Source of the DNA: Isurus oxyrinchus
Taxonomy: Eukaryota
Assembly (NCBI GenBank): GCA_026770705.1
Contig: JANJGN010000052.1
Coordinates: forward strand, 1,550,001-1,614,000
Direction: 5' to 3'
DNA: 64,000 nt
The notes beneath the pieces were generated by a model. The model was given only the letters and a program-made list of their open reading frames with translations, had not been told where the DNA came from and ran no database searches. The position numbers and the translations under genes are program-made. Shown here one piece after another: positions 2,127 to 49,147 of this stretch (position 1 is its first letter; every line of letters begins with the position of its first letter).

Positions 2127-5100
2127 TCAGAGAGAGAGAGAGTGTCTGAGAGACAGAGAGAGACAGAGAGACTGTGTGAGAGAGAAAAAGAGATAGAGAG
2201 AGTGTGTGCATGTGTGAGGGAGAGTGTTTGTATATGAGGGAGAGAGTGTGCATGTGAGAGTGTGTGAGAGAGAGTGTGTGGGAGAGAGCGTGCGTTTGTG
2301 ACAGAGAGTGTGTATGTGTGCGAGGGAGAGAAAGAGAGAGACAGCAGAAGAGCGAGATGAAGAGAAATGTTAAATGTTTGTGAGAGAGAGAATGTGTGTG
2401 TCTGAGAGAGTGTGTGTGTGTTTGTGAGAGAGAGTGTGTGCTTGACAGAAAGAGAGATTGTGTTAGTTTTAGGGAAAGTGTGTGAGTGTGTGAGAGAGTG
2501 TTTGTGTCTGAGAGAGAGAGAGAGAATGTATTTGAGGGAGGGAGACAGAGAGAATGTGTGTGTGAGAGAGAGAGAGATAGAGCAGAAGAGTGCGATAGAG
2601 AGAGATTGTGAGTGTTAGAGAGAGAATGTGTGTGTGTGTGAGAGAGAGATAGAGCAGAGGAGTGTGATAGAGAGAGATTGTGAGTGTTAGAGAGAGAATG
2701 CATGTGTGATAGAGAGAGAGAGAGAGCAGAGGAGTGTGAAAGAGAGAGATTGTGAGTGTTAGAGAGAGAAGGTGTGTGTGTGAGAGAGAGAGAGAGCAGA
2801 GGAGTGTGATAGAGAGAGATTGTGAGTGTTAGAGAGAGAATGTGTGTGTGTGAGAGAGAGAGAGAGAGCAGAAGAGTGTGATAGAGAGAGATTGTGAGTG
2901 TTAGAGAGAGATAGTGTGTGTGTGTGAGAGAGAGATAGAGCAGAGGAGTGTGATAGAGAGAGATTGTGAGTGTTAGAGAGAGAATGTGTGTGTGTGAGAG
3001 AGAGAGAGAGCAGAGGAGTGTGATAGAGAGAGACTGTGAGTGTTAGAGAGAGAATGTGTGTGTGTGTGAGAGAGAGATAGAGCAGAAGAGTGCGATAGAG
3101 AGAGATTGTGAGTGTTAGAGAGAGAATATGTGCGTGTGAAAGAGAGAGAGAGAGAGCAGAAGAGTGCAACGGAGAGAGATTGTGAGTTTGAGAGAGAGAA
3201 GGTGTGTGCATGTGAGAGAGAGAGAGCAGAAGAGTGTGATAGAGAGAGACTGTGAATGTTAGAGAGAGAATGTGTGTGTGAGAGAGAGAGAGATAGAGCA
3301 GAAGAGTGTGTTAGAGAGAGATTGTGAGTGTTAGAGAGAGAATGTGTGTGTGTGAGAGAGAGAGATAGAGCAGAAGAGTGTGATAGAGAGAGACTGTGAA
3401 TGTTAGAGAGAGAATGTGTGTGTGAGAGAGAGAGAGATAGAGCAGAAGAGTGTGATAGAGAGAGATTGTGAGTGTTAGAGAGAGAATGTGTGTGTGTGAG
3501 AGAGAGAGATAGAGCAGAAGAGTGCGATAGAGAGAGATTGTGAGTGTTAGAGAGAGGATGTGTGTGTGTGAGAGAGAGAGATAGAGCAGAAGAGTGTGAT
3601 AGAGAGAGATTGTGAGTGTTAGAGAGAGAATGTGTGTGTGTGAGAGAGAGAGATAGAGCAGAAGAGTGTGATAGAGAGAGACTGAGTGTTAGAGAGAGAA
3701 CGTGTGTGTGAGAGAGAGAGAGAGAGAGCAGAAGAGTGCGATAGAGAGAGATTGTGATTGTTAGAGAGAGAATGTGTGTGTGTGTGAGAGAGAGATAGAG
3801 CAGAAGAGTGTGATAGAGAGAGATTGTGAGTGTTAGAGAGAGAATGTGTGTGTGTGTGTGTGAGAGAGAGATAGAGCAGAAGAGTGTGATAGAGAGAGAT
3901 TGTGAGTGTTAGAGAGAATATGTGTGTGAGTGAGAGAGAGATAGAGCAGAAGAGTGTGATAGAGAGAGATTGTGAGTGTTAGAGAGAGAATGTGTGTGTG
4001 AGAGAGAGAGAGATAGAGCAGAAGAGTGTGATAGAGAGAGATTGTGAGTTTTAGAGAGAGAATGTGTGTGTGTGAGAGAGAGAGAGAGAGAGCAGAAGAG
4101 TGTGTTAGAGAGAGATTGTGAGTGTTAGAGAGAGAATGTGTGTGTGTGAGAGAGAGATAGAGATAGAGCAGAAGAGTGTGATAGAGAGAGAATGTGTGTG
4201 TGAGAGAGAGAGAGAGAGCAGAAGAGTGCGATAGAGATTGTGAGTGTTAGAGAGAGAATGTGTGTGTGAGAGAGAGAGAAAGAGCAGGAGTGTTTTAGAG
4301 AGAGATTGTGAGTGTTAGAGAGAGAATGTGTGTGTGTGAGAGAGAGAGAGATAGAGCAGAAGAGTGTGTTAGAGAGAGATTGTGAGTGTAAGAGAGAGAA
4401 TGTGTGTGTGTGTGAGAGAGAGAGAGATAGAGCAGAAGAGTGTGATAGAGAGAGATTGTGAGTGTTAGAGAGAGAAGGTGTGTGTGTGAGAGAGAGAGAG
4501 ATAGAGCAGAAGAGTGTGTTAGAGAGAGATTGTGAGTGTTAGAGAGAGAATGTGTGTGTGTGAGAGAGAGAGATAGAGCAGAGGAGTGTGATAGAGAGAG
4601 ATTGTGAGTGTTAGAGAGAGAATGTGTGTGCGATAGAGAGAGAGATAGAGCAGAAGTGTGCGATAGAGAGAGATTGTGAGTGTTAGAGAGAGAATGTGTG
4701 TGTGTGAGAGAGAGAGAGATAGAGCAGAAGAGTGCGATAGAGAGAGATTGTGTTTGTGAGAGAGAGAGATAGAGCAGAAGAGTGTGATAGAGAGAGATTG
4801 TGTTTGTGAGAGAGAGATAGAGCAGAGGAGTGTGATAGAGAGAGATTGTGAGTGTTAGAGAGAGAATGTGTGTGTGTGAGAGAGAGAGAGAGCAGAAGAG
4901 AGCGATAGAGAGAGATTGTGTTTGTTTGAGAGAGAATGTGTGTGTGTGAGAGAGAGAGATAGAGCAGATGAGTGTGCTAGAGAGAGATTGTGAGTGTTAG
5001 AGAGAGAATGTGTGTGTGTGAGAGAGAGAGAGATAGAGCAGAAGAGTGTGTTAGAGAGAGATTGTGAGTGTAAGAGAGAGAATGTGTGTGTGTGTGAGAG

Positions 5101-6528
5101 AGAGAGAGATAGAGCAGAAGAGTGTGATAGAGAGAGATTGTGAGTGTTAGAGAGAGAAGGTGTGTGTGTGAGAGAGAGAGAGATAGAGCAGAAGAGTGTG
5201 TTAGAGAGAGATTGTGAGTGTTAGAGAGAGAATGTGTGTGTGTGAGAGAGAGAGATAGAGCAGAGGAGTGTGATAGAGAGAGATTGTGAGTGTTAGAGAG
5301 AGAATGTGTGTGCGATAGAGAGAGAGATAGAGCAGAAGTGTGCGATAGAGAGAGATTGTGAGTGTTAGAGAGAGAATGTGTGTGTGTGAGAGAGAGAGAG
5401 ATAGAGCAGAAGAGTGCGATAGAGAGAGATTGTGTTTGTGAGAGAGAGAGATAGAGCAGAAGAGTGTGATAGAGAGAGATTGTGTTTGTGAGAGAGAGAT
5501 AGAGCAGAGGAGTGTGATAGAGAGAGATTGTGAGTGTTAGAGAGAGAATGTGTGTGTGTGAGAGAGAGAGAGAGCAGAAGAGAGCGATAGAGAGAGATTG
5601 TGTTTGTTTGAGAGAGAATGTGTGTGTGTGAGAGAGAGAGATAGAGCAGATGAGTGTGCTAGAGAGAGATTGTGAGTGTTAGAGAGAGAATGTGTGTGTG
5701 TGAGAGAGAGAGAGATAGAGCAGAAGAGTGTGATAGAGAGAGATTGTGTGTGTTAGAGAGAGAATGTGTGTGTGAGAGAGAGAGATAGAGCAGAAGAGTG
5801 CGATAGAGAGAGATTGTGAATGTTAGAGAGAGAATGTGTGTGTGTGAGAGAGAGAGAGAGCAGAAGAGTGTGATAGAGAGAGATTGTGAGTGTTAGAGAG
5901 AGAATGTGTGTGTGTGAGAGAGAGAGAGCAGAACAGTGCGATAGAGAGAGATTGTGAGTGTTAGAGAGAGGATGTGTGTGTTTGTGAGAGAGAGAGAGAG
6001 CAGAAGAGAGCGATAGAGAGAGATTGTGAGTGTTAGAGAGAGAATGTGTGTGTGAGAGAGAGAGAGATAGAGCAGAAGAGTGTGATAGAGAGAGATTGTG
6101 AGTGTTAGAGAGAGAATGTGTGTGTGAGAGAGAGAGTTAGAGCAGAAGAGTGAGATAGAGAGAGATTGTGCTTGTTAGAGAGAGAATGTGTGTGTGTGTG
6201 TGAGAGAGAGATAGAGCAGAGGAGTGTGATAGAGAGAGATTGTGAGTATTAGAGAGAAGGTGTGTGTGTGAGAGAGAGATAGAGCAGAAGAGTGTGATAG
6301 GGAGAGATTGTGAGTGTTAGAGAGAGAATGTGTGTGTGAGAGAGAGAGAGAGAGCAGAATAGTGTGATAGAGAGAGATTGTGAGTGTTATAGAGAGAATG
6401 TGTGTGTGTGAGAGAGAGAGATAGAGCAGAGGAGTGTGATAGAGAGAGATTGTGAGTGTTAGAGAGAGAATGTGTGTGTGTGAGAGAGAGAGATAGAGCA
6501 GAAGAGTGTGATAGATAGAGATTGTGAG
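2127..6528. repeat. Compound satellite, ~60-64 bp unit (gagagatagagcagaagagtgtgatagagagagattgtgagtgttagagagagaatgtgtgtgt); less regular before ~2560
   Basis: Dozens of tandem copies with variable GA/TG run lengths. Confidence 0.97.
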
Positions 6529-7149: not shown

Positions 7150-7630
7150 CTTCACAGGATTCCCCCACAAGGGGTAACATCCCCTCAGCATCGACCCTGT
7201 CAAACCCCCCACCACCTCAGAATCTTATATGTTTCAATAAGATCACCTCTCATTCTTCTAAACTCCAATGGATACAGGGCCCAACCTGCTCAACATTTCC
7301 TCATAAGACAAACCCCCTTCATCCCAGGAATCAGCCCAGTGATCCTCCTCTGAGCTGCCTCCAATGCAGAGTCTATCCCTCCCTAAGTAAGGAGACCAGA
7401 ACTGTACACACTGCTCCTGATACAATCTCACCAACGCCCTGTGCAGTTGTAGCAAGACTCCCCTCCTTTTATACTCCATCCCTTTGCAATAAAGGCCAAC
7501 ATTCCACTTGCCTTCCTCATTCCGTGCTGTTCCTGAATGCTGACTTTCTGTGATTCATGTACAAGGACACCCAGATCCCTCTGTACCGCATTCTGCTGCC
7601 TCTCTCCATTGAAGTAATATTCTGCTTTTT
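7150..7630 (-). mobile_element. CR1/HER1-like LINE 3' fragment in the leader-V intron
   Basis: Minus-strand translation MEYKRRGVLLQLHRALVRLYQEQCVQFWSPYL, typical of the CR1 ORF2 C-terminus. Confidence 0.85.
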
Positions 7631-7662
7631 GATGTTCAGTCCCCTCCCTTGTTGCCTTTCAG

Positions 7663-7964
7663 GAGTGACGTCAGAGGGATGGTCTATGAATGCGCTGCCT
7701 CGGAGGGCCATCAGCAGCTCTTGTGTGGTTATTCCGTGTAGCTTTGACTTTCCTTCCCACTCTTACACAGCACTGCACGGAGCTTGGTATAAATATTGGT
7801 ATAGATGGAAATATACCGTCACATACACCAAAGATCCCAATTATGGGGTGGCCACATTCGTGGGACGTGCTAAAATAATCGGCGACTTGGAAGGGAAGAA
7901 TTGTTTGGTGAGGATTGACAGTCTCAGAGCTGAAGACAGTGACGTGTATTGCACCCAATTCTAA
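7663..7964 (+). pseudogene. Truncated Siglec/MAG-like V-set exon
   Basis: Acceptor cctttcag| at 7662; GVTSEGWSMNALPRRAISSSCVVIPCSFDFP...HGAWY...GRAKIIGDLEGKNCLVRIDSLRAEDSDVY, then runs into Gypsy gag sequence at ~7950 with a stop at 7962-7964; no F-strand Arg, G strand or donor. Confidence 0.85.
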
Positions 7965-10804: not shown

Positions 10805-11165
10805 AGAGATAGGGAGGGTTACAGGGGCTGGAGGAGGTTACAGGTATAGGGAGGGTTGTAGGGGCTGCAGGAGGTTACAGATATAGGGAGGGTTGTAGGG
10901 GTTGAAGGTGGTTACAGAGATGGGGAGGGTTGTGGGGGTTGGAGGAGGTTACAGATATAGGGAGGGGTGTCGGGGTTGAAGGTGGTTACAGAGATGGGGA
11001 GGGTTGTGGGGGTTGGAGGAGGTTACAGATATAGGGAGGGGTGTCGGGGTTGAAGGTGGTTACAGAGATGGGGAGGATTGTAGAGGCAGGTGGAGTCTGC
11101 CTTAGGGAGGGTTGTAGGGGCTGGAGGAAATGGAGAGAGAGAGGAGGTTACAGATATAGGGAGGG
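10805..11165. repeat. 37-bp minisatellite (agagatagggagggttgtaggggctggaggaggttac)
   Basis: About 9 degenerate copies, inverted relative to 13815-15780. Confidence 0.9.
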
Positions 11166-12845: not shown

Positions 12846-13237
12846 TAATAGAAACTTACCTGTCAGAAGCCAGTTTATGTTGATGTGAGTCTGAGTCGAT
12901 GACTGAACCCAGTCGGTAACTTGTTCCATACAAAGCAAGAACGTTCATGCCCTTCAATGTTCCTGGATAAACCATTAACAAAGCTGGTGACAGACAGTCT
13001 CCACATGGTAAACACTGACCGATCAACACATGACATGGCTGTTAACCCCTAAACCTCAGCGTAAATCAGTTCCCCCTCGAGGCCCCTTGTCCGAAATAAA
13101 AGCAACGCACACAATTTGTAAAATAGTAAGTGTCTGGCAGGAAGGAGGAGCAATGAGAGGAGTAAGGGGTTAGGGGGCATGCAGTTCACCTGATTTGCCG
13201 ACATAAGAACCAGCCCCTCTGTTTTTGCTATGTTGTG

Positions 13238-13450
13238 TTGCGTCAATATGAACACATATTTGCACAAGGTGAAGGGCGTTGCGGAGGGACTGATAGTTCT
13301 CGGCGCCAGACAGTCAATGTCCCAGTGACCTTACTGCTGGTCCCAGGCCAGTGGGACAGGGAACATCGACACTGCAATATCCAGAAATGGGTGTGATACC
13401 ACACAGCTACCCACCCGCGGCTGTCCCCTTCAAGTGTTTCAGGTATAAGA
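13238..13450 (+). promoter_or_regulatory. Putative hepcidin proximal promoter: C/EBP-like sites (13238-13247, 13260-13267), GGCGCC BMP-RE plus AGAC SBE (13302-13311), TATA (13444-13450)
   Basis: TTGCGTCAAT, TTGCACAA, GGCGCCAGAC and TATAAGA lie 70-285 bp upstream of the ATG; the same motif classes regulate mammalian HAMP. Confidence 0.65.
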
Positions 13451-13520
13451 GCAGGAAGCTCCTCTAGTTACAAACCAAAGCATCAAAGCAGAGCCAGAAG
13501 ATCAGAAGAGACAGGCAGAG

Positions 13521-13612
13521 ATGGGAAGCTCCCAGATGAAATGGCGACTTGTCTTGTTCACTCTGACTTTGCTGCTCTCCCTGCAGCTGAGTCACTTCTT
13601 CTCCTTGTCGAG
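13521..13612 (+). CDS. HAMP: Hepcidin-like exon 1 (signal peptide MGSSQMKWRLVLFTLTLLLSLQLSHFFS...), apparently one base short of phase 0
   Basis: ATG 77 bp after the TATA start, basic-hydrophobic signal peptide, donor AG|gttaag at 13613; 92 nt where 93 would keep frame with exon 2. Confidence 0.7.
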
Positions 13613-13814
13613 GTTAAGCTAAGAGATGTCCCTCTGGGTGAGGTGTTTCTTGCACATGACTCTACGTCTACCACCCAGATAGACTGGTCTCTTCCGCAGT
13701 TTGATATTATTATGTTCGTGCCTTTAATATTGTCGCCCTCTATGAATTTAACATCATTTCCTTCTGTCGTTTCCCCTGAAATTCTCATTCTTGTTTTCAA
13801 TCCCTCCTCAGCCA

Positions 13815-15780
13815 CTCCCTATCTCTGTAACCTCCACCAGCCCGTACAACCCTCCCTATTTCTGTAAACTCCTCCAGCCCCTACACCCCTCCCTATCTCT
13901 GTAACCTCCACCAGGCCTTACAACCCTCCCTATCTCTGTAACCTCCTCCAGCCTCTACACCCCTCCCTATCTCTGTAACCTCCTCCAGCCCCTACAACCC
14001 GCCCTATCTCTGTAACTTCCTCCAGCCCGTACAACCCTCCCTATCTCTGTAACCTCCTCCAGCCCCTACAACACTCCCTATCTCTGTAACCTCCTCCAGC
14101 CCGTACAACCCTCCCTATCTCTGTAACCTCCTCCAGCCCCTACAACCCTCCCTATCTCTGTAACCTCCTCCAGCCCCTACAACCCTCCCTATCTCTGTAA
14201 CATCCTCCAGCCCCTACAACAATCCCTATCTCTGTAACATCCTACAGTCTCTACAACCCTCCCTATCTCTGTAACCTCCTCCAGTCCCTATAACCCTCCC
14301 TATCTCTGTAACCTCCTCCAGACCCGACAACCCTCCCTATCTATGTAACCTCCTACAGTCCCCACAACACTCCCTATCTCTGTAACCTCCCCCAGGCACC
14401 ACAACCCTCACGATCACTGTAACCTCCTCCAGACCCTACAACCCTCCCTATCTCTGTAACCTGCTCCAGACCCTACAAACCTCCCTATCTCTGTAACCTG
14501 CTCCAGACCCTACAACCCTCCCTATCTCTGTAACCTCCTCCAGCCCCTACAACCCTCCCTATCTCTGTAACATCCTCCAGCCCCTGCAACAATCCCTATC
14601 TCTGTAACATCCTACAGTCTCTACAACCCTCCCTATCTCTGTAACCTCCTCCAGTCCCTATAACCCTCCCTATCTCTGTAACCTCCTCCAGACCCGACAA
14701 CCCTCCCTATCTATGTAACCTCCTACAGTCCCCACAACACTCCCTATCTCTGTAACCTCCCCCAGGCCCCACAACACTCACGATCACTGTAACCTCCTCC
14801 AGACCCTACAACCCTCCCTATCTCTGTAACCTGCTCCAGACCCTACAACCCTCCCTATCTCTGTAACCTGCTCCAGACCCTACAACCCTCCCTATCTCTG
14901 TAACCTGCTCCAGACCCTACAACCCTCCCTATCTCTGTAAAATCCTCCAGGCCCCACAACCCTCACAATCACTGTAACCTCCTCCAGCCCCTACAATCCT
15001 CCTGAACTCTATAACCTCCTCTCCACACTATAACTCTCCCTATCTCTGTAACCTACTGTGGCCCCTACAGCAGTGTCTATTTTGGTAACCTCCTCCAGCC
15101 TCTACAACCCTCCCTACATCTGTAACCTCCTCCAGCCCCCACAACCACCCCATCTCTGTAACCTCCTACAGACCCTACACACCTCCCTACCTCTGTAACC
15201 TCCTCCAGCCCCCACAACTCCCCCATCTCTGTAACCTCCTACAGCCTCTACAACCCTCCCTATCTCTGTAACCTCCTACAGCCCTTACAACCCTCCCTAT
15301 CTCTGTAACCTCCTCCAGCCCCTACAACCCTCCCTATCTCTGTAACCTCCTCCAGCCCCTACACCCCTCCCTATCTCTGTAACCTCCTCCAGCCTCTACA
15401 GTCCTCCCTATCTCTGTAACCTCCTCCAGCCCCTACAACCCTCCCTATCTCTGTAACCTCCTACAGCCTCTACAGCCCTCCCTATTTCTGTAACCTCCTC
15501 CAGCCCCTACAACCCTCCCTATCTCTGTAACCTCCTCCAGCCCCTACACCCCTCCCTATCTCTGTAACCTCCTCCAGCCTCTACAGTCCTCCCTATTTCT
15601 GTAACCTCCTCCAGCCCCTACAACCCTCCCTATCTCTGTAACCTCCTACAGCCTCTACAACCCTCCCTATCTCTGTAACTTCCTACAGCCCTTACAACCC
15701 TCCCTTTCTCTGTAACCTCCTACAGCCTCTACAGCCCTCCCTATCTCTGTAACCTCCTCCAGCCCCCACAACCCTACCTA
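13815..15780. repeat. 37-bp minisatellite (ccctccctatctctgtaacctcctccagcccctacaa), ~50 copies, in hepcidin intron 1
   Basis: Direct tandem copies visible. Confidence 0.97.
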
Positions 15781-15789
15781 AATCACTGG

Positions 15790-16430
15790 TCTGAGTCTCA
15801 CTCCAGGGAATTCAGTCCCATAATGTAGATCAACGCTCCGTGCTGAGGGAGTGCTGCACTCTCAGAGGGTCAGTAGTGTGGAGGTGTTGCACTATTGGAG
15901 GGACAGTACTGAGGGAGTGCTATACTGTCGGAGGTCAGTACTGAGGGAAATCTGCTGTGTCGAAGGGTTAGTACTGAAATAGAGCTGCACTGTCGGAGGG
16001 TCAGTACTGAGGGAGCGCTGCACTGACGGAGGGACAATACTGTGGGAGTGCAGCACTATCGAAGGGTTAGTACTGAGGGAGTGCTGCAGTGTCAAAGGGT
16101 TAGTACTGAGGGAGCACAACAATGTTGAATGAGACATTAAACTGAGTCCCCCGTCTGCCCTCTCGGGCGGGTGTGAAAGATCCCACAGCCACTATTTGGA
16201 GGAAGAGCAGGGGGTGTGCTCCCCGGTGTCCTGGGACCAATATTTATCCCTCAACCAACATCACCAAAAACAGATGATCTAGGCCATGATCACATTGCTA
16301 TTTGTGGGATCTTGCTGTGCACAAATCAGCTGCCACATTTCCTACAGTGTGAGTGCACTTCAAAAACATCCTTCAGTGGCTGTGAAATGCTTTGGGATGT
16401 GGTGAAAGGCGTTAGAGAAATGCAAGTCTG
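15790..16430 (+). mobile_element. DeuSINE/SacSINE1-like SINE with an internally amplified 33-bp unit
   Basis: cagtactgagggagtgctgcactgtcggagggt repeats, then gagacattaaactgag...gaaagatcccacagcc...gaaatgcaagtct tail. Confidence 0.8.
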
Positions 16431-16528
16431 TCCTCCTCCCCCTCTCTCTCCTGTACCTCTCTCTCTCTCTCTCCCTCTCCCTCAATCCTCCTCTCACTTT
16501 CTCCCTGATAAATTCTTTCTTTTTGCAG

Positions 16529-16585
16529 GTTGACACTGCTTTAGGTTCTTCGACGATTGAGAAATCTGTGGATTCCCCGGACACG
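16529..16585 (+). CDS. HAMP: Hepcidin-like exon 2 (propeptide VDTALGSSTIEKSVDSPDT, phase 0-0)
   Basis: Strong acceptor ttctttctttttgcag|, donor ACG|gtaggt; 57 nt; acidic/Ser-rich linker of typical hepcidin exon-2 size. Confidence 0.75.
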
Positions 16586-18124
16586 GTAGGTGGAAATTCA
16601 TTCCTTATTTTAAGGTTTCTCCCTGCTCGTTTCTTCCACAGAAAGTTTTCTGATTTCAAGCTGATTTCAGTGGCAGTCTGTCTCGGTTATACTCAGGAGG
16701 CATGTTTGAAATCGAGCCCCCCCAACTTTTTTGCAAAGCTGGGAAGAGACAATTCCAAGGAAGTGAACATATCCCCACAGGAATTTTAAATGTAACCCAC
16801 GCCGGGAATAGTGAGAGGGAGACTGATCCAGCCTGGGAGTGGGTTAAAGAGAGGCTGGGAGTCGAGAGTCGGAGAGAGGGATGGAATGGGGGAGGGAGGG
16901 ATTGGAAGAGAGAGACAGAGAGTGGGACGGGGAGGGGTGAAAGGGAAAGAACACAGGTGGGAGAGAGTGACAGAGGGAGAAATTAAAGAAGAGATGCAGA
17001 GTGAGGGAAAGTGAAAAGGGAAGAGAGATTGTCCAAGAGAGAGAAATTAACAGGAAAGGGAGAGTTACAGAGTGAGCGAAAGTTACAAAAATAGTGTGAG
17101 AGAGAGGGAGAGATACAGAGTGGGAGAATGAGACAGGGAGAGAGAGGGAGAGAGACAGGAAAAGGGAGAGAGGAGAGAAAGATTGGGAGAGAGGGCAATT
17201 GAGCGGAAGAGTAGGAGAGAGAGAGACAGGGAGAGGAGGAGTGGAAGAGAGGAAGAGAGAGAGAGATATGGAGCAGGAGAACACCTCCTCTGGTCCCGAT
17301 GTTCCTCCAAAATCTCTGAAATTACTGCATCTCCCGGGTCCCCCTGATTCCCATCGCTCCACCATTGGTGGCCGTGCCTTCAGCTGCCTGGGTCCCTGAG
17401 CTCCGGAATACCCTCCCTTAACGTCTCTGCCTCTCTCTCTCTCTCTCTCTCTCTCTCCTTTAAGACACTCCTTAAAAACTGACATCTTTGACCAAGCTTT
17501 TGGTCACCTATCCCTAATATCTCCATATGTGACTCAGTGTTAGACTTCTCTCTGATTTACGCTCCGGTAATGTGGGCTGGGACATTTTGCAATGTCAGAG
17601 GCGCTGTGTAAATGCAAGTTGTGAGTGTTATGTGGAAGGGAGACCCCAGGCGGCAGTCAGTGCCAGAGACTGGAGTCATTGTGTGCAGACCATATCTAAT
17701 CTCTCCGAATGCACAATCGGTTTGACTGTCAGCCAAAGCACTTTTGATATTTGATCCTTCTAACTGTTTATAACCAGGCCTACATCAAACACCGAGAGGC
17801 TGGTGAATCAACAGACACCTTAGAGGATCGAGTGAAAGACAAAGAGGACTTGCATTTCTCTAGCGCCTTCCAACACATCAGGACGTCCCAAAGTGTTTCG
17901 CAGACAATCAAGTGCTTTTTTTCTTTCATGTGAGGTCACTGATGTACTGTGGGAAAAGAATCAGCCATTGGCGCACAGTAAGATCCCACAGACAGCAGCA
18001 TGATAATGACCAGCGCGCTCCCAGTACTTGCACTGCAAGTGTCAGTTCAGGATGTGTGCTCGATTCTCTGCAACTCTCAGCTCTGAGTTAAAAGGACCAC
18101 CAGGCATAATTGAGAAATTACCGA

Positions 18125-18805
18125 GCTGTCGGAGGGTCAGTACCGGCGGGGGGGCAGGACAGTCGGAGGGTCAGTACTGAGGGGGTGCTGCATTGTCAGA
18201 CGGTCAGTCTTGGAGTGCTGCACTGTCAGAGGGTCAGTACCGGCGGGGGACTGCACAGTCGGAGGGTCAGTACTGAGGGGGTGCTGCATTGTCAGACGGC
18301 CAGTACTGAGGGAGTGCTGCACTGTTGGAGGGTCAGTACTGAGGGGGTGCTGCATTGTCAGACGGTCAGTACTGAGGGAGTGCTGCACAGTCGGAGGGTT
18401 AGTACTGAGTGGGTGCTGCACTGTTGAAGGCGCTGTCTTTCAGATGAGACATTAAACTGGGGCAACCAATCTGCCCTCTCAGATGGATGTAGAGGATTCC
18501 ATGGCCACAATTTAAATGAAGTGCGTCAGGAGTTGGGGGGTATGTGTGGAGGGGGTGGTGGGGGGTGGATGGGATGCAGTTATGTCCACTTTCCTGGGGC
18601 AAACATTTATCCCTCAACTGACATTGGTAAAAAACTGAAAATCGGGGCCATTATCACATTTCTGTTTGTGGGATCTTGCTGTGCGTGAATTGCCTGCTGC
18701 GTTTCCTACATTACAGCGGTGAGCTCACTTCAGAAAAAGTCCTTCCTTCAGCTGTGGAACACTTTGGGCCATCCTGAGGAGGGGAAAGGCGCTATAGAAA
18801 TGCGC
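18125..18805 (+). mobile_element. DeuSINE/SacSINE1-like SINE with 33-bp tandem array
   Basis: Same structure as 15790-16430. Confidence 0.8.
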
Positions 18806-18892
18806 CATCCTCCTTCCAATGACGCGCCTGATTGAAATGATGCCTTCTTTCTTTCCGGAATGTTCTCACCTATTGTCCTCCTGCTTTTCCAG

Positions 18893-19009
18893 GGCTCCTT
18901 GCTGCAGCGCCAGAACAGAATGAGCAGACAGCAGCTCTGCAGATTCTGCTGTAACTGCTGTAATTGGAGAGAACCAAATGAGACTTGTGGTCTCTGCTGT
19001 AGATATTAG
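18893..19009 (+). CDS. HAMP: Hepcidin-like exon 3: GSLLQRQNR-MSRQQLCRFCCNCCNWREPNETCGLCCRY*
   Basis: Acceptor ctgcttttccag|; R-x-x-R convertase site; eight Cys in the hepcidin pattern C-x2-CC-x-CC-xn-C-x2-CC; TAG at 19007-19009. Confidence 0.93.
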   Translation, partial: GSLLQRQNRMSRQQLCRFCCNCCNWREPNETCGLCCRY

Positions 19010-19314
19010 ACCCTGGCCTCATTCACGCAAGGTCATCCTGCACCATGCCACAGCCTCTCCCCTCCTTATCTACTGCTTAGCAATCTATTTCACACAGGCC
19101 CTGTTCATTAATTCAAGCTGAAACTTTACCTGCGTTTTACAGCAGGGAAAGAAGCCATTTGGCCCATCTGTTCCATGCTGGAGTTTCTGCTCCACACGAG
19201 TCTCCGCCCACCCCTTCTCCATCTCACCCCATCACCATATCCTTCTATTCATTTCTCCCTCGTGTGTTTATCCAGCTTCCCCTTAAATACATCGACACTA
19301 TTCACCTCACGTGA

Positions 19315-19456
19315 CTGTGTTTGTGTCTGTCTTTATGAGCGTGTGTGTGTGACTGTCAATATGTGTGTGTCAATGTGAATGTGTGTGATTGTGTCAGTGT
19401 GTGTGTGTGTATGTGTGACTGTCAGTGCGTGTCAATGTGAATGTGTGTGATTGTGT

Positions 19457-19502
<46 letters not shown>

Positions 19503-19590
19503 CTGTGTCAGTGTGTGTCAATGTGAATGAGTGAGTGTGTCAGTGTGTCTGTGTGGGTGTGGGTGTGTGAGTGTGCAAGTGAATGTGTGA
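19315..19590. repeat. (TG)n-rich microsatellite
   Basis: Long TG runs. Confidence 0.9.
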
Positions 19591-19786
19591 GGAATCTTAT
19601 GACTAAGTCATTTGAATGGATGTTACTGGGGTTAATGATAGTTAAAATTCAGAGAGATGTAAAGCGGGCTCCTGATTTTGCTGCTTTATGCTCCCGGGCA
19701 CAGATTCACCCCGACAATGTGTTCATGATTCACCATCATCTTGTCGGGACTTTAATTGTAAAGATTATGATTTGTGAAAAAAAATG

Positions 19787-19792
19787 AATAAA
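19787..19792 (+). other. Candidate polyadenylation signal for the hepcidin-like gene
   Basis: First AATAAA I found downstream of the stop codon; use unproven. Confidence 0.35.
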
Positions 19793-21419
19793 CAACTTCT
19801 GTCTTCACAAAGTGTCTGGCTTGGTATTTCAGGCTACTTGTCTCTCCCTCACCCTCCCCCCCCACCATGCCCCCCACACCAGGGAACAATTGTCCCCCCT
19901 TCCTCTGAAGTTCTGGGTAAAGATCAGCTTTGTTCAATGCAAGCTGTTCCGACATCGAGAACGTTGTTACAAATATCTCACAAAGGGCACACGCCATGAT
20001 AGCCCACTTTCAACAGATTTTACCAGTTGACCAGGTTGAAAACCTTTTCATAAACCACAACGTAGGTGTTCAATTCTTGCTGCTGTTTGCTTAATGTTCT
20101 CATAACTGCTATAACCTCTCTAGTTCCACTACATAACAACACCAACATAAATAAACAGAAGCAGGAGTAGGCCTTTTGGCCTCCCAAGCCAGCTTGTCCA
20201 TTCAATTTGAACCTGGCTCCTGCTGAAAGTTATTTAAGTTGAAGCGATAAAGCCATCAGGTGCAGGGATTAAAATGTAAGCAAAGGAAAAATAATACTTA
20301 GACATGAGATTTAAAATCAGTTTCTGTGAAGAATCATACTGAGGCCATTGCACTGGATTCCTTCTTTCCAGAGTGAAGGGTTTAAAACTAGGAGTCACAT
20401 TCAGCAGCTGCGTTGTCTTCTCTAGTTGACTATTTGGAGGTTGCCTGTAGATGTGAATCAGCAGGTCAGCAGCTTTGAGGAGTGAGTGAAGGTCCCTTTT
20501 ATTTACAGGATCTGCCACAGGGTGTGCAGGAATATTCCTGCTGAATTCTCTATCCTTGCATTCATGAAGGATTTGAAACTGGAAGTCATATTCAGCAGCT
20601 GCAATGGCCTCTGTAGCCAACTGTCTGGAGGTTGCCTGTACAGGTGGACTCAGCAGGTCAACAGCTTTGTAGGGCGGGGGGGTGCATGGGTAGTAAAGGT
20701 CCCGTTACTTTAAAGGCTCTGCCAGTGCAACACTTGATGATCCTGGGTCAAAATCATGTAACTCCCTCCCCAACAGCACTGTGGATGTGCCCTATGGAGG
20801 TTCCTTGGCTTCAACAAGCAGCCTACCAGCTCTACTCTCAATTCCTCTTCACACTTGCTTCCTTCCTCCTCTGGTCTTTACTTTGTTATAGTGTTAGTGT
20901 CCGCTCTGCCTTTTTTGTTGCTTTCCCAATTCTTCCCACCAACTCTCTCTGGCTTGATCCTTCTCTGTGCTCATCTCATTGGTTTGGGTTTCTATCCGTT
21001 CATTGACCTGGTGTAATCTGAAACTGGTGCAATCAGGTAGGGGTGGGGGGGTTGGCGCTGGCCGTGGGTGGTGATACACGGCTACCTTTTTACCAAAATT
21101 CTTTCACGGGATGTGGACAGCGTTTGTTACCTGTTCCTGACTGACCCCTTGAGAAGGGGGTGCTGAGCTGCCTTTTCGAAGTGCTGCAGTTCACCTGGTT
21201 TGACTGGTCTGTGGCGGGTTTTGATATAACTCAGTGGCTTGCTCGGCCATTTCAGGGGCCAGTTAAGAGTCAACCACATTGCTGTGGGTCAGGAGTCACA
21301 CGTAGGCCAGAATGGGTAAGGACGGCAGGTTTCCTTCCCCAAAGGGCATTAGTGACCCAGATGGGTTTTTGCAACAATTGGCCTTAGTTTCATGGTCACC
21401 ATTACTGAGACTAGCTTCG

Positions 21420-23635
21420 CATTCCAGATGTCACATCCAGTCATGGACAATTAAACAACTCACTGGAGGAGGAGGCTCCACAAATATCCCCATCCTCAAT
21501 GATGGAGGAGCCCAGCACATCGGTGCAAAAGACAAGACTGAAGCATGCGCAACAATCTTCAGCCAGAAGTGCTGAGTGGGTGATCCATCTCGGCCTCCTC
21601 CGGAGATCCCCAGCATCAGAGATGCCAATCTTTAGCCAATTCGATTAATTCCACGTGACATCAAGAAAGGGCTGAAGGCACTGGATATTGCAAAGGCTCC
21701 AGGCCCTGACAATATTCTGGCAATAGTACTGAAGACTTGTGCTCCAGAACTTGCTGCGCCCCTAGCCAAGCTTTTCTGGAATTTTCTAGTACAGCTGCAA
21801 CACTGGCAACTACCCGGCTATGGGGTACGTCCTGTACACAAAAAGCAGGACAAATCCAACCCAGCCAATTCCCCAGCAGTCTATTCTTGATCATTACTAA
21901 AGTGATGGAAGGGGTCATCAACAGCGCTTGCAAGCAGCACCTGCTTACCAAGAACCTGCTCACTGACGCTCAGTTTGTGTTCCACCAGGATCATTCAGCT
22001 CCTGGCCTCATTACAGCCTTGGTTCAAACATGCACAAATGAGCTGAACTCCAGAGGTGAGAGTGACTGCCCTTGACATCAAGGCAGCATTTGACTGAGTG
22101 TGGCAAATCAAGGAGCCCGAGCAAAACTGGAGTCAATGGGAATCGGGGGAAAACTCTCCGCTGCTTGGAGTCATACCCAGCACAAAGGAAAATGGTTGTG
22201 ATTATTGGGGGTCAATCATCTCAGTTCCAGGACATCACTGCAGGAGTTACTCAGAGTAGTGTCCTAGGCTCAAACATCTTCAACTGCTTCATCAATGACC
22301 TTCCTTCCATCATAAGGTCAGAAGTGGGGATGTTTGCTGATGTTTGCACAATGTTCAGCACCATTCACGGCTCCTCAGATACTGAAGCAAGTTATGTCCA
22401 AATGCAGCAAGACCTGGACAACATCCAGGCTTGGGCTGACAGGTGACAAGTAACATTCATGCCACACAAGTACCAAGCAATGACCAACTCCAACAAGAGA
22501 GAATCTCATTGAAGGTGCAGAAAATTTGGATTTATGTTCAAGAGCCAGCCAGGACCAACAGCTAGGGCGCCAAAGCGTACACATCCTTACGTGAAAACTT
22601 AAAAACCTGTACTAAGGGCTCCGTTGGAAATTTGCAATGAGGAAATGGGAGACACACACACAAGGACACTGGGTGACTCAATCAAGAAATGGGGAAGGTT
22701 ATTTCACACCGTCCGATGGCCTTGAACCACATCCAGTCAGCCCCCGGAAACCTTTTGTAGCGAACAAACATAGATTCTTTGCTGTCTCAAAAGGACAATA
22801 GCCAGTCTCTGCCCTGTAATTACTGTACAAGAACACAATTATCAGCCCACCGGGGGGTCATTGTGCTGTGGCCTTTGTCTAACTAATACCATTACGTTGT
22901 AACTGAGAGTAAAAATATATAAACTGTGCTCATTTGAACCTCGGTGGAGAAGCGCCTGGACTGCCCAGCGTTTGCTCCCCACATGCCTAATAAAGGAACC
23001 ACTTGAATATTGCATCTGGAGTCCGAGTGTTGAAATTTTGTACCAGAATATTCCACAGACCATTCATAACCATCGCCCCTTGGCATTCAATGGCATTACC
23101 ATCAATGAATCCCCCAATATCAACATCCTGGGAGTTACCATTGAGCAGAAACTGAACTGGACCAGCCATATAAACACTGTGGCTGCAAGAGCAGGTCAGA
23201 GGCTGGGAACCCTGCAGACAGTAACTCACCTCCTGACTCCCCAAAGCCTGTCCACCATCTACAACGCACAAGTCAGGAGTGTGATGGAATACTCTCCACA
23301 TGCCTGGATGAGTGCAGCTCCAACAACACTCAAGAAGCTCGACACCATCCAGGACAAAGCAGCCCAATTGATTGGCTCCCCTTCCACAGAGCTAGATAGA
23401 TTCTTGATTAACAAGGGGGTGAAAGGTCATTGGGGGTAGGCAGGAATGTGAGGTTGAGGTGACAATCAGATCAGCCATGATCTTACTGAATGGCGGAGCA
23501 GGTTCGAGGGACTGAGTGACCTACTCCTGATCCTAACTCAGATATCCAGATGTTCTCAAAGGCAATTGGGGATGGGCAACAAATACTGGCCTAGTCAGCG
23601 ACACCAACATCCCTGAAATGAATAAGAAAAAAATG
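21420..23635 (+). mobile_element. Decayed non-LTR LINE (CR1-group RT) with nested insertions
   Basis: RT motifs GVTQSSVLGSNIFNCFINDL and GMFADV; C-terminal ILGVTIEQKLNWTSHI...QVRSVMEY; A-rich tail at ~23625. Confidence 0.85.
22510..23057 (+). mobile_element. Putative solo LTR inserted in the LINE
   Basis: Interrupts the LINE between gagaatct and aaccatc; TG...CA ends, TATATAAA ~22916, AATAAA ~22989; no clear target-site duplication. Confidence 0.4.
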
Positions 23636-26074: not shown

Positions 26075-27669
26075 CTAGAGAACACACAGAAAGAAATCGT
26101 CACTGACTCTCCGCTTTCAATCTCTCACTCTGGCTGAACAATCAAACTTCATATCACTGCAACATTTGCTGTAATATTAACCCATCCACTGGGATTCAAT
26201 GTGGAATGAATGTTTTCATTGTAAACACTCTAAGAGTGGACAATCGGAACTTTCCCCTTAGCGTGGAACATTGGTGAGAATGGATCATTGTGCTGTTGGA
26301 CTCCCTGTCCAATGTTTCTCTCTATTGCTGTGTACAGGATTGTGCTGTAGAAAATTCTGGAAACGTTTAGTGCCGGGTGAAAATCCATCTCGGACGTGTG
26401 TGCGAATCGGGCAGGATCGAGATGGACTCCCCCACGGACTTACACCCCCCGCTTAATAAACAGTTCCAATCTTTACCCAGAGAGAGGGGAGAATGTGGAA
26501 CTCGCTCCCACAGGGAATGGTTGAGGTGAATAGTAGGAAATTAGGAAGTGAAATTGCTTGAAAAGCTTGGAGATGCAAGGGTTAAGTGTGACCGTGCCAC
26601 CACTGGTGGGAGAGTGTAACTACAGCGTGACGTTTACATAGGCAATCCCCATTATGAACAAGGACATTGGACATCATGTGAAAAATGGGCACTGGAAAGC
26701 TGAGAACTTGATGTAAGCTTTTCACCAACAGGAATTCCCTTCCTAAACCTCTCCACTTTCCTCTTACTCTCAAATACTCAAACAAAATTTCACACAAAAT
26801 CACGTAAGGAGGAATTGGGACAGGTGACTGGTCAAAGAGTTAGATTTCAGGAAGGTTCTTAAAGGAGGATAGAGAGTTGGAGAGGCAGAGAGTGTCTGTG
26901 AGTAACTCTGTGCATCTGAGTGTCTGTAATAGACTTTGCAATTTCCATATTCTTCCATAAATATGAAAGGGAACACAAATCCCAGAATCCAGGTCAACTC
27001 TCCGGTGCAGCACTGAGGGAGGTCAGGTAATCCACAGGGGAGTATGTGCTAGTGTGTTTGTTTGTGAGTGTGTCTTTGTGTGTGCTCATAGATGTGAGAT
27101 TGTGTGTCTGCAGGTGTCGATATAAGGCTGTATATTTATGTGTGTTGTTGTAGTGTTTCAATCTGAGAGAGATGTTGAAGTTTGTCTTAACTAACGTTCC
27201 ACAGTGATGGTTATGAACCCCTCCACTGCTCCATGTTCATTCACTGAGCACACTGATAGTCTCCAGTGTCCCTGGATGTAACGTGAGGAATCACCAACCA
27301 CAGCTCATTGTTGGAACTTGTTCTGTTCATTTAATATTCAGATGTCAGGACCGGACTCAACAAGACAGATTGCAGGTTTACCAACAGAAAGTGAACAACA
27401 ATTTATATTCAAAGGGAAGAGAGTGCTGGTTAATCAGCAAGTGGTCACTGATTGGAGGAGGTGTTGCCATGGAAAATAATGTGTGTGAGATGTAAAGTTT
27501 AGACAGCTTGTCTCTTCATTCAGCAACAATCAAATAAAGATCAGTTATCTTCTATCGACTGTGAAGCACTTTGAGAGGCATGAGAATGTGGACACTGAGA
27601 ACGGGCTGCACTGTCAGAGGGTCAGCGCTGAGGGAGTGCTGATGTAGAATGAAGGGTGTCCGTACTTAC

Positions 27670-27966
27670 CTTGCACAGTTAGTACGAGGGTCCGCTCCGA
27701 TGAAACAGATGGATATCTCACTCTGCAGCTGAGAGTGTGTCTGTGGTGTTTGAGTGATGGAATCAGGGTCAGAACAGAAGTATAGGTCAGAGTGACATCA
27801 TGCTGAGTTACAGTGTTTGAGACTGATCCAGGTACGTCAGTGGGAGTGTCCCAGGTTAAGACAGGTGCTGCTGTTCCATTGCACGTTGTGTTGAAGGTGC
27901 AGCTTACATCCACACGCTTTCCTGCAATAATTTCAGCAGGGAATATTGTGGATTTATCTGTGAAAT
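27670..27966 (-). CDS. Siglec-like gene A, C2-set Ig exon
   Basis: DFTDKSTIFPAEIIAGKRVDVSCTFNTTCNGTAAPVLTW...TLSCRVRYP...LTVQ; 297 nt, phase 1-1, gtaagt donor; extra Cys typical of Siglec domain 2. Confidence 0.92.
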
Positions 27967-28694
27967 CTAACAGACAGAGAATGGATCCTTTTAGAGAAAT
28001 ATAACGTGAAGCATCAGTTCAAATAGAAATCACAGTCCCACAAGAAAAAGCACTTTTACAAGGATGATATCAGATCTAACAGATTACAATGATCAGGAGA
28101 GAATTTCCTGCTTTGAGACTTTGGTATTTCTGTCTCTCAGCTTAATACACGTTCACTCCGAGACACTTGAACTGATAATAGTGGGTGAGGGTGAAGGAGC
28201 AGACCAGAGTTTGGAGTGCACTACCCCATCATTCACTCAGCAATCTGGGCCATTTATTACTTTGCAATTTGTGGGAGCTTGCTGTGCACAAATTGGCTGC
28301 TGTGTTTCTCACATTACAACAGTAACTACAATTCAGGAATCAGCTCATTGGCTGTGAAGTGATTTCGTCCGTGGTGAGGTGGTGAAAGGTGCTACAGAAA
28401 TGTGAATCTTTCTTCTGTCGATATGTCAGACTTCAAGACAGGATTAGAGAGATCGATGGGAGTGGATAACCTGATAACATTGATGGACACAGTCAATACA
28501 TTTAATCATTGTCATTAAAGTGAGTATTAGAGGTTGCTTTAGGACTGAACTGGAAGCTATCAACAGGTTATTGAGAATCAGACAGTGTGTTATAATAAGC
28601 TGTGTTTTGTGTTAATATGTAAACGTCACAGATTGTGTTATTTCCCATTGAGTGTTGGATGTGAATTGATGAGTAATTATAACACAGCACTTAC

Positions 28695-29063
28695 CAGAAA
28701 CGTGAAGCTGGGTTACAGGGTAATAGTTATGGCTCAGACCATTGTCAAATTCTATTCTGAAAAAATAAGGTCCTGCATCTTCCCGTCTGATGTTGTTTAT
28801 AATCAGGGAACAGTCGCCATGTTTCAGGTCTCCAGACAGCCGGGTCCGATTGTGGAAACGTGGTAACTCATGACTGTGATCCTTGGAGTGAAAGGCAATG
28901 GGAGCCCAGGGAATCTGTTCCTCATTATTAAACCAGACTCCACCTCGCGGTTGGTTTTCCAGACACGATGGATAACTGTAATGACATGGAATCTGTACAC
29001 ACGAACCTTCCTGCGCTGTCACCTCTCATGGAGTGTCACCTTTCCACTCTTGTGACAGTCCAA
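28695..29063 (-). pseudogene. Siglec V-set pseudo-exon V2A (in-frame TGA at 29026-29028)
   Basis: Intact splice sites; VGLSQEWKGDTP*EVTAQEGSCVQIPC...YFFRIEF; CGA in V2B. Confidence 0.88.
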
Positions 29064-29950: not shown

Positions 29951-31339
29951 CCTACATTCTTACCTTCTTAAAATATTAAAGCTGCAGAATAAACATGCAA
30001 GTGACTGACCCGCTCGACCCACCTTCCATCTGGGGGTCCCATGGGGAGGACCCTTCCTGAGCCAGATCCACCAGCCAACATGGTCTGGATCCGAGCACAG
30101 GAGACACGGGGGGGAGTGACTAACAGGCTCCTTGTGACAGGCCCCGTCTGTCCAATGGCTGGCTTTCAGCTGCCAAGGCCAGAGTGGTCCTTGCTAAAAC
30201 CGGCTCAGGACAGGCCAGGACCCCTGTGCAGACCCCCTCCAGCGCTGCAGCCTCTGTACAAACCCCTCATGCGCTTGTGGGGAGACACAAACAAGGCTGC
30301 ACATTACCGAGGAGAATCCCCTCTACGGACTAAGGGGCTGACTCATCACCCTAAACTCAGCAAATGAGGAGGCTCTCGCTCGGTATCGGGGCTTGGCATT
30401 CGCTCAATAAAAATAATCAAATGACATTTTGGTCAGAAATCTAAGGAGGTTGTACATTCCCTCTAAAATAAGACTCGAGCTGGGGTCGAGGGTCAAAGGG
30501 CAACAAGTTATATTTACACAACAAATTTTACATGACAAATCACCCCAAGGTGCTACACAGGAGCGTCATAAAACAAAGTATGTCACCCAGACACATGTGG
30601 AGATATTAGCGACAGCTGACCAGAAGAGGTCGGTGTTATGGAGAATCTTCAAAGAGGGATGAAATGGATAGTGAGAGAGAGAGAGATAGAGATAGAGAGA
30701 GAGAGAGACAGAGAGAGTGAGAGAGAGGGACGGAGAGGGGTTGAGGGAGGGTATTACAGAGCTCGGGCCCCAGGCAGCTGAAGGCACGACCGCCGATGTT
30801 GTAGTGATGGGATCGGAGGATGGTCAAGAGGCTGGAATTGGATGAGCACAGAGACCTAAGAGGGTTGGAGGGGCTGGAGGAGGTTACAGAGAGAAGGAAG
30901 GTTGTAGTGACTGGGCAGGTTACAGAGGTAGGGAACGTCGTCGGGACTGGAGCAGGCTACAGTGATAGGGAAGCTTTTAGGGGCAGGAGGAAGTTACAGA
31001 AATAGGGAGGGTTGTAGGGGCTGGAAAAGTTAAGAGAGATTGGGAGAGTGTTGAGTCTGGAGGAGTTTGCAGAGGTCGGGAGGGTTGTAGTGACTGGGGC
31101 AGGTTACAGAGATAGGGAAGCTTTTAGGGGCAGGAGGAAGTTACAGAGATAGGGAGGTTTGTTGTGGCTGGAGGAGGTTGCAGAGATTGGTAGGTTTGTT
31201 GGGCAGGATCAATTTGCAGATATAGGGAAGCGGTAGATACTTCAAGAGGTTACAGGGAATGGGATGGTTGCAGGTACTGGAGGAGGACGAGGAGATTACA
31301 GGGATAGTGAGGAAACAAATATGTAAATTTGGACATTGA

Positions 31340-32270
31340 GACTTTGCTTGACCAGGAGCCAGTCTCGGTCATCGAGCAGAGCGGGTGATAAGGGAACAGG
31401 ACCTGGTGTGAGTAAGGACGTGGTCAGCAGTTTTGAATGGCCTCAAGTTTATGGAGTGTAGAGCGTGTGTTGGAACAGTCGAGACTGGAGGTAATGAAGG
31501 CGTGGATGAGGGTTTCAGCAGCAGATGAGCTGAGACAGGGTGATGTCGTGCGATGTTACGGAGGTGGAAATAGACGGTGTTAGTGAGGGCGCAGATATGA
31601 GGCCGGAAGCTCATCTCAGGATCAAATGGGACAACAAAGCTGTGAACAGATTGGCTTCAATCTCAGAGAGCTGCCAGGGAGAGGAATGGAGTTGGTAGCG
31701 AGGGAACAGAGTTTGGAGCGGGGAATGAAGACAATGGCTTCAGTCTTTCCAATATTTAATTGGAGGGAATTTCTGCCCATCCAGTACTGGATGTCGGATA
31801 AGCAGCCTGATAATTTAGCAGCAGTGGAGGAGTCGAGAGAGGTGGTGGTGAGGTAGAGCTGGGCATCCTCAGTGGACAGGTGAAAACTAACACCGTTCAG
31901 ATGATGCTGCAAAGCCATTGCAAGTGATTCTCTGGCTACGATGAGATGGATAAGAATGGAGCCAGGGGAGAGCAGTCCCACCCAGCTGGACGACAGTGGA
32001 GAGATGTTGGAGGAGGATGGTGTGGTCGAGCGTGTCAAAGGCTGCAGACAGATCGAGAAGGACGAGGAGGGAAAGTTGACCTTTGTCACAGTCACACAGG
32101 ATGCCATTTGTGACCTTGATAAGAGCTGTTTCAGCACAGTGGCTGGGGTGGGAACCTGATTGGAGGGATTCAAACATGGAGTTCCGGGAAAGATGGGAAC
32201 AGATTCGGGAGATGGAAACAGGTTGCAGGACTTTGGAGGGGAAAGAGAGGCTGGAGATGGGACGGGGGTT
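31340..32270 (-). mobile_element. L2-clade LINE RT fragment (copy at ~47945-48875)
   Basis: FESLQSGSHPSHCAETALIKVTN...LLDLSAAFDTLDH; LQLNIGKTEAIVF. Confidence 0.85.
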
Positions 32271-32541
32271 TACACGGACAGTGTGAGGGGTGGAAGGTGT
32301 AGTGGGGAGGAGATACTTCACTCAGGGGGGAGGTGTCATCACCCCTCAGCTCGGTTTATGTTACAGCTATGATGTGGATTCAATCACACACAATAAGCTC
32401 ATGGATCTGGGAGCAGAAATAGACAAATCATTAAAAATAGTGACGCTGGTTAACATGGCCAAAAAACAAGCAAATCAAACACTATTATTTCCCATTGAGT
32501 GTTGGATGTGAATTGTTGAGTAATTATAACACAGCACTTAC

Positions 32542-32916
32542 CAGAAACGTGAAGCTGGGTTTCAGGACGGTTGTTGTATCTATTCCTGTTGTCAAATTCT
32601 AGGCTGAATAAATAATATCCTGCATCTTCCCGTCTGATGTTGTTTATAATCAGGGAACAGTCGCCATCTTTCAGGTCTCCAGACAGCCGGGTCCGATGGT
32701 GGAACTGTGGTAACTCGCGATTATGATCCTTGGAGTGAAAGGCTATAGACCGTTCATTCCATTTTTCCCAATTCCTTCTCATATACCAGATTCCGACTGG
32801 TGATCTCGCTACTAAATATGATGGATAACTGTAATTACATGGAATCTGTACACACGAACCTTCGTGCGCTGTCACCTCTCCTGGAGTGTCACCTTTCCAC
32901 ACTTGTGATAGTCCAA
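32542..32916 (-). CDS. Siglec-like gene A, V-set exon V1A (open; F-strand Arg replaced by Ser)
   Basis: 375 nt, phase 1-1; EGSCVQIPCNYSYP...GDLKDGDCSLIINNIRREDAGYYLFSLEF; Siglec Cys pattern with no canonical F-strand Cys. Confidence 0.92.
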
Positions 32917-33319
32917 CTAGGGAGAGAAATATCAATATTTAACTCTGAATGTTTTCTCAATCCACTAGACTCAATATCCACCCCCTCCATCACTGGGGCA
33001 CACAGGCTACAGTCTGGATAATCCACAGGTCACACAATGAATGCCCCAAGGTTTCACAACAGATTGAAGAGAATTCCGGACACAGGAGTGGACAAGTTCA
33101 TTCTAAATTGGCTCATGACCCTCAGGTACCTATTTAGTGAAGTCAGTCTGCCACCCAACACAGTGTCTACAAGACACACTAATTGAAGTGAGTTCACTGC
33201 TGATTTACAACGTAGGACAATGGATTAGGAGCCTTCAGAATTCCCCCATTATCACCATCATGAATCATGAATTGGCCTAGCTGTCCTAGATCCTCAGTGT
33301 CTAAGGCAGTGGTTCCTAT

Positions 33320-48800: not shown

Positions 48801-49147
48801 GGGGACGGATTCGGGAGATGGAAACACGTTCAAGGACTTTGGAGGGGAAAGAGAGGCTGGAGATGGGACGGGGGTTTACACGGACAGTGTGAGGGGTGGA
48901 AGGTGTAGTGGGGAGGAGACACTTCACTCAGGGGGGATGTGTCATCACCCCTCAGCTCGGTTTATGTTACAGCTATGATGTGGATTCAATCACACACAAT
49001 AAGCTCATGGATCTGGGAGCAGAAATAGACAAATCATTAAAAATAGTGACGCTGGTTAACACGGCCAAAAAACAAGCAAATCAAACACTATTATTTCCCA
49101 TTGAGTGTTGGATGTGAATTGTTGAGTAATTTTCACACAGCACTTAC

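Follow-up and report, generated by a model that had tools for sequence, protein, structure and literature searches.

A probable copy of a multi-copy, transcribed hepcidin-family gene, out of frame as assembled, within a Siglec/CD22-like cluster of Isurus oxyrinchus

Hepcidin and the ferroportin site to which it binds are believed to have emerged jointly at the base of the jawed vertebrates (PMC8235187). In sea bass, Hamp1 alone regulates ferroportin and Hamp2 acts in defence (PMC5665920); a review of the subject states that the second hepcidin genes of fish are uninvolved in iron regulation, and that some cartilaginous fish have a second ferroportin with a different residue at position 326 (PMC8235187). 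The literature searched contained no work on the hepcidin genes of chondrichthyans; one plasma proteome paper includes hepcidin in its list of nurse shark proteins that lack a whale shark orthologue (PMC9207270). These systems are compared here with a locus at positions 13444 to 19810 of a 64-kilobase (kb) stretch of DNA from the shark Isurus oxyrinchus (contig JANJGN010000052.1, positions 1,550,001 to 1,614,000), which was analysed as a whole and is referred to as the window. The locus is probably one copy of a multi-copy, transcribed hepcidin-family gene that lies inside a Siglec/CD22-like cluster and is out of frame as assembled. Its features, in window coordinates, are as follows.

13444 to 13449, forward strand: TATA box (TATAAG), recognized from the sequence, approximately 75 base pairs (bp) 5' of the ATG
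13521 to 13612, forward strand: coding part of exon 1, signal peptide by translation and hydrophobicity, 92 nucleotides (nt) as assembled (30 codons plus AG)
13613 to 16528, forward strand: intron 1, GT..AG, 2916 nt, of which a 37-bp minisatellite makes up two thirds
16529 to 16585, forward strand: exon 2, 57 nt, 19 codons of acidic and polar propeptide, with frame 1 alone open
16586 to 18892, forward strand: intron 2, GT..AG, 2307 nt, phase 0, containing a 33-bp minisatellite
18893 to 19009, forward strand: exon 3, coding portion, 117 nt with the stop counted, encoding the end of the propeptide with RQNR and a peptide with eight cysteines
18920 to 19006, forward strand: predicted mature peptide, 29 residues following the putative cleavage site RQNR
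19010 to 19810, forward strand: probable 3' untranslated region (UTR), rich in (TG)n at approximately 19330 to 19590, with the first AATAAA at 19787 to 19792

The locus belongs to the hepcidin family, as the product of exon 3 reaches 32.5 bits with Pfam Hepcidin (PF06446; E 1e-7, covering positions 24-52 of the 53 in the profile), above the curated gathering cut-off of 27 bits. Translation of exon 3 yields 38 residues and a stop, of which nine are propeptide residues ending in R-Q-N-R and 29 form a peptide with the cysteine layout C-x2-CC-x-CC-x8-C-x2-CC, after which come two more residues and the stop; when all six frames are scanned, this eight-cysteine pattern occurs only once in the window. 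The only solved chains matched by exon 3 are those of bass hepcidin (1s6w) and human hepcidin (1m4f), to which all cysteines align around a four-residue insertion in the loop of the shark peptide, with weak E-values of 0.24 and 9.1. The prepropeptide layout is also present, with a signal-peptide-like exon 1, a propeptide, and RQNR six residues before the first cysteine; cleavage is predicted there because this R-x-x-R motif sits where known hepcidins have their furin site. Single-sequence AlphaFold2 prediction of the 38-residue product gave a helical model (mean predicted local distance difference test score 68, predicted template modelling score 0.35) that is unusable for a disulfide-rich peptide.

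The TATA box at 13444 is the sole TATAA[AG] within positions 12900-13521. The frame that begins with the ATG at 13521, and that contains a further in-frame ATG at 13536, encodes basic K/R residues followed by a leucine-rich core (Kyte-Doolittle mean of 11-residue windows up to 2.5), so that the exon 1 product looks by its composition like a typical signal peptide. Exon 2 is preceded by a polypyrimidine tract and AG and followed by GTAGGT, and a pyrimidine tract and AG lie directly 5' of exon 3. All four splice sites of the two introns are intact at the locus, as are the promoter and the stop. Within the window, the promoter and each of the hepcidin exons occur only once.

Transcription was assessed by a run search with the last exon (18893-19830), after which four runs were placed on positions 13350-19330 (5,981 letters). 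All four consist of Logan contigs rather than raw reads and carry one depth figure per contig, which is a rough guide. Runs X1 and X2 represent one sample from organism A, run X5 is from the same organism in another study, and run X6 is from organism B. The sampled words of 18893-19830 are present at 83% in X1 and 72% in X2, and the word depth in these two runs is 10^5 to 8x10^5 for the three exons versus 10^1 to 10^3 for the unique stretches of the introns. In X5 and X6, no contig falls on the hepcidin exons, only on repeats. The joint of intron 2, from 16585 to 18893, is traversed by nine contigs of X1 and X2 with GT..AG borders and the expected 2307 nt removed. The main joint of intron 1, from 13612 to 16528, occurs in nine contigs of X1 and two of X2 (11), and skips 2915 bases versus the 2916 of the GT..AG intron, one letter fitting on either side. 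The contig joints at the exon borders imply that these runs contain RNA. The hepcidin gene family is spliced and transcribed, and for its transcribed form the gene model is correct.

These results bear out in part the original prediction of a hidden three-exon hepcidin gene. Its TATAAG at 13444, its exon from 13521 and its exons at 16529-16585 and 18893-19009 lie where it had placed them; the 117-nt exon translates to RQNR and eight cysteines in the hepcidin pattern, as it had described; the match that it proposed to seek with the Pfam profile was obtained above the cut-off; the spliced contigs skip 13613-16528 (except for one G) and 16586-18892 exactly, in agreement with its three-exon structure; and a spliced transcript containing exon 3 exists in X1 and X2, with joints at 13612/16528 and 16585/18893.

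The one G concerns the reading frame, which at the locus as assembled is broken between the signal peptide and the mature peptide. From the ATG at 13521 to the donor at 13612, exon 1 has 92 nt instead of 93, placing intron 1 in phase 2, and upon canonical splicing to 16529 the signal-peptide frame reads L-T-L-L-stop, five codons into exon 2. The 2915-base skip means that the mRNA holds one more G than the assembly: it reads TCGAGG/GTTGAC across the joint (marked by the slash), with GGG where the assembly can supply only the GG of 13611-13613, so that exon 1 has 93 nt and the signal-peptide frame is restored, with Ser-Arg before the joint and Val-Asp after it. It is because of this missing G at the end of exon 1 that translation from the signal-peptide ATG stops in exon 2. 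Thus, the phase-0 intron 1 and the precursor of approximately 88 residues that had been predicted are not what the assembled sequence encodes. No contig with a canonically spliced 92-nt exon 1 is found among the joints listed, and an exact-sequence look-up of two open frames specific to the GG form (13541-13864 and 13521-13619) found neither in the collection searched.

Either the locus is a pseudogene or null allele of very recent origin, or a base was lost in the assembly; the chances are roughly even, leaning slightly to a real defect. If the G was lost through an error of assembly or polishing among near-identical duplicates, the copy would be intact in the animal and would encode the full in-frame precursor, feeding the abundant mRNA. 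This account comes somewhat short of an even chance. It agrees with the intact promoter, splice sites and stop, with coding exons that apart from the G are without difference from the RNA contigs (only 19117, in the UTR, is listed), and with intron contigs that have zero differences from the locus over 143-273 bases. The insertion of a G at 13611-13613 is, however, absent from the listing for unspliced contigs, and a run of two bases in place of three is atypical as a long-read error.

More than one form of the gene is represented in the RNA. A further contig with the same intron 1 skip length carries the exon 2 variant T16530G, and the exon 2 variant C16584T is found at the intron 2 joint at high depth in both X1 and X2; thus two exon 2 variants co-exist. 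At position 19117 in the 3' UTR the locus has G, and A accounts for 97% of the RNA depth in X1 and 100% in X2. The intron contigs with zero differences fit the view that this copy, or a twin identical to it, is transcribed. In a minor alternative splice, represented by a single contig in either of X1 and X2, exon 2 is joined instead to an acceptor within intron 2 (16585 to 17778, AACCAG/GCC), which lies in repeat-derived sequence and is probably an exonized repeat.

A second type of hepcidin is transcribed as well. One contig of X1 matches exon 3 as far as 18925, beyond which it reads on in frame, by hand translation, as H-L-S-I-C-M-Y-C-C-G, which by its residues is a canonical, hormone-type N-terminus with His3 and a hydrophobic residue 4; the gene that encodes it lies outside the window. 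The shared start of exon 3 and the divergent continuation from 18925 imply that the animal transcribes at least two types of hepcidin with a common pro-region, and so the locus is not a lone hidden gene. For comparison, sea bass Hamp1 begins Q-S-H-L-S-L-C-R-W-C-C-N (PMC5665920), and human hepcidin begins D-T-H-F-P-I-C-I-F-C-C-G in the alignment to 1m4f. The peptide predicted from the locus has six residues before its first cysteine, M-S-R-Q-Q-L, with R-Q-Q at positions 3-5 in place of the hormone-type motif of His3 and a hydrophobic residue 4. Its loop between the fifth and sixth cysteines has eight residues including an N-E-T sequon, and its four basic and two acidic residues give a net charge of approximately +2 and an isoelectric point of approximately 8.2.

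In the in-frame form of the family, the TATA promoter would drive a three-exon mRNA in which exon 1 supplies the signal peptide, a short acidic propeptide that ends in RQNR, a candidate proprotein-convertase site, comes from exon 2 together with the first part of exon 3, and the remainder of exon 3 supplies the 29-residue, eight-cysteine peptide, which is expected to fold as a disulfide-laddered hairpin and to be secreted. By analogy with fish hepcidins, the R-Q-Q residues, the longer loop and the copy number together suggest that this long-loop peptide is more likely to be a defence-type sister, like Hamp2, than a ferroportin-binding hormone.

Several observations weigh against this reading of the locus and of its peptide. 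The RNA contigs are not assignable to this locus and may derive from its sister copies; position 19117 indicates that most of the RNA comes from other copies or another allele; and in runs that consist of contigs only, depth is a weak measure, with rare forms dropping out. Exon-by-exon protein searches did not retrieve an orthologue from another species. The peptide retains six residues before the first cysteine, Ser2, Leu6 and the C-R-F that follows, and that it has lost ferroportin binding is a step that we infer; its net charge of +2, no higher than that of human hepcidin, gives no special support to an antimicrobial role.

The same residues are the starting point for the opposite assignment, in which the long-loop peptide is the iron hormone, or one of them, and binds ferroportin, perhaps as the partner of the second, Cys326-less ferroportin paralogue of cartilaginous fish. 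Besides the six residues before the first cysteine, Ser2 and Leu6, the block C-R-F-C-C-N-C-C resembles sea bass Hamp1 (PMC5665920); the TATA box has a GGCGCC hexamer 142 bp upstream of it; the contigs reach a very high depth, as is the case for liver hepcidin; and a second ferroportin with another residue at 326 does exist in some cartilaginous fish (PMC8235187). This assignment is nevertheless unlikely, since Arg and Gln replace His3 and the hydrophobic residue 4, a transcript of the canonical type exists alongside, and multi-copy expansion is typical of the defence-type hepcidins of teleosts. A broader and more speculative scenario, which we consider improbable, is that the cartilaginous fishes split hepcidin independently of teleosts into two lineages, one the canonical hormone and the other a long-loop form, multi-copy and massively transcribed, that expands and decays with the surrounding Siglecs and, instead of being solely antimicrobial, might pair with the Cys326-less ferroportin.

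The frame shift could also be exploited rather than deleterious, if translation began at the ATG at 13541, in another frame, from which 24 codons run exactly to 13612 and join exons 2 and 3 in phase to give a leaderless pro-hepcidin. This is very improbable: the stretch contains Asp and Glu and is without signal-peptide character, the eight-cysteine peptide would form no disulfides in the cytosol, two ATGs of the signal-peptide frame come earlier, and the extra G of the RNA contigs puts this start out of frame in the abundant transcripts.

The hexamer in the promoter region was located by a motif scan.

13302 to 13307: GGCGCC hexamer upstream of the TATA box, at a distance of 142 bp

This hexamer, which occurs once in 12900-13521, has the same sequence as the bone morphogenetic protein-responsive element in mammalian HAMP promoters, and its presence upstream of a hepcidin TATA box may be due to chance. 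Neither a STAT-type TTCNNNGAA nor an E-box was found in the scan of 12900-13521. Within the gene, the exons are spread apart by repeats, as had been proposed: a minisatellite with a 37-bp unit in 53 copies occupies 13815-15780 of intron 1, a minisatellite with a 33-bp unit occupies 18126-18424 of intron 2, and sequence that recurs elsewhere in the window makes up 89% of intron 1 and 43% of intron 2. The 37-bp minisatellite is also found inverted at 10805-11128 and 30860-31203, and the 33-bp minisatellite recurs at 18126, 24883, 39774 and 40385. Other repeats of the window include a 4-kb satellite at 2547-6528 with units of 72/144 bp, rich in (TG)n and (AG)n, with a run of N at 585-817 adjacent; a 24-bp tandem repeat at 61415-62372 (40 copies, 93% matches) in which several frames are open; and remnants of long interspersed nuclear elements with reverse-transcriptase-like translations at 21600-23450, 31625-32321 and 48231-48927, which match Pfam RVT_1 weakly (16 bits).

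The neighbourhood of the hepcidin gene consists of exons for Siglec/CD22-like V-set and C2-set domains on both sides.

28615-29025, 32453-32938, 45586-45879 and 49059-49598, reverse strand: V-set and Ig_CD22 domains (Pfam)
27617-28018 and 44416-44751, reverse strand: C2-set domains (Pfam)
7554-7961, forward strand: Siglec-like V-set exon (C-V-V-I-P-C-S-F…), Pfam V-set at 19 bits, below the cut-off

The V-set match at 7554-7961 is upstream of the hepcidin gene and on the strand opposite to the other Siglec-like exons. The exons on the reverse strand repeat in units approximately 16.8 kb apart, and the one at 32453-32938 has F-S-L-E versus F-R-I-E in the others, so that the sialic-acid-binding arginine is missing. 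In mammals, HAMP adjoins MAG and CD22 and lies between USF2 and these Siglec genes. The Siglec neighbours of the shark locus match the mammalian order HAMP-MAG-CD22, which would favour orthology of the locus; the window showed no USF2-like exon.

Homology searches of large sequence collections came out blank. An exhaustive HMMER search with exon 3 against 1.84 billion representatives returned one unrelated match of 1442 amino acids (E 3.5e-4); a word-indexed search with the 57-codon frame that contains exon 3, both whole and as residues 18-57, returned no candidates; and the best score in a look-alike search of the ESM Atlas was 0.77, for a plant cluster. A query of 38 residues is too short for these libraries, and the blanks show neither novelty nor absence. 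The notion that the match is to an open frame rich in cysteines by chance, and that the three exons do not form a gene, to which the weak E-values against solved structures and the single unrelated library match might lend colour, is ruled out by the Pfam match above the curated cut-off and by spliced contigs with GT..AG borders exactly at the predicted exons, and it would also leave the signal peptide, the TATA box and the conserved gene neighbourhood to coincidence.

If the proposed reading is correct, a shark hepcidin family with two peptide types in a Siglec neighbourhood like that of mammalian HAMP would place the origin of the locus in the gnathostome ancestor, and hormone and defence hepcidins would have separated in a second case, independent of the first. 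For annotation, the locus illustrates short three-exon genes that are split by minisatellite-filled introns and of which some copies are broken by single bases; as a result of both, copy counts taken from automated gene sets are unreliable.

Among the known systems with which the gene can be compared, LEAP2 is likewise a small, liver-type secreted cysteine peptide with a propeptide, but it has four cysteines and belongs to another Pfam family, and the product of exon 3 has no Pfam match to LEAP2, only to Hepcidin. Teleost Hamp1 and human hepcidin-25 (PDB 1m4f, 6wbv) share with the shark gene the three exons, the signal peptide, the short propeptide with its basic cleavage motif, the eight cysteines in the same order, the six residues before the first cysteine, the blocks C-R-F/W-C-C-N-C-C and C-G-x-C-C, and a position adjoining Siglec genes. 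They differ in that residues 3-5 are H-L-S or H-F-P, whereas those of the shark peptide are R-Q-Q, and in that the loop between the fifth and sixth cysteines has 4-5 residues, whereas that of the shark has eight with an N-E-T sequon; the shark gene is also multi-copy, and this copy of it is out of frame. Teleost Hamp2, represented by bass hepcidin (PDB 1s6w), is the best solved match, with an identical C-R-F-C-C-N-C-C, and resembles the shark gene in its expansion as a gene family and in being without the hormone-type N-terminal motif, but the N-terminal stretch of the shark peptide is full length and its loop is longer. Hamp2 arose within the ray-finned fishes, and therefore any likeness in role between Hamp2 and the shark peptide would be parallel rather than due to shared descent.

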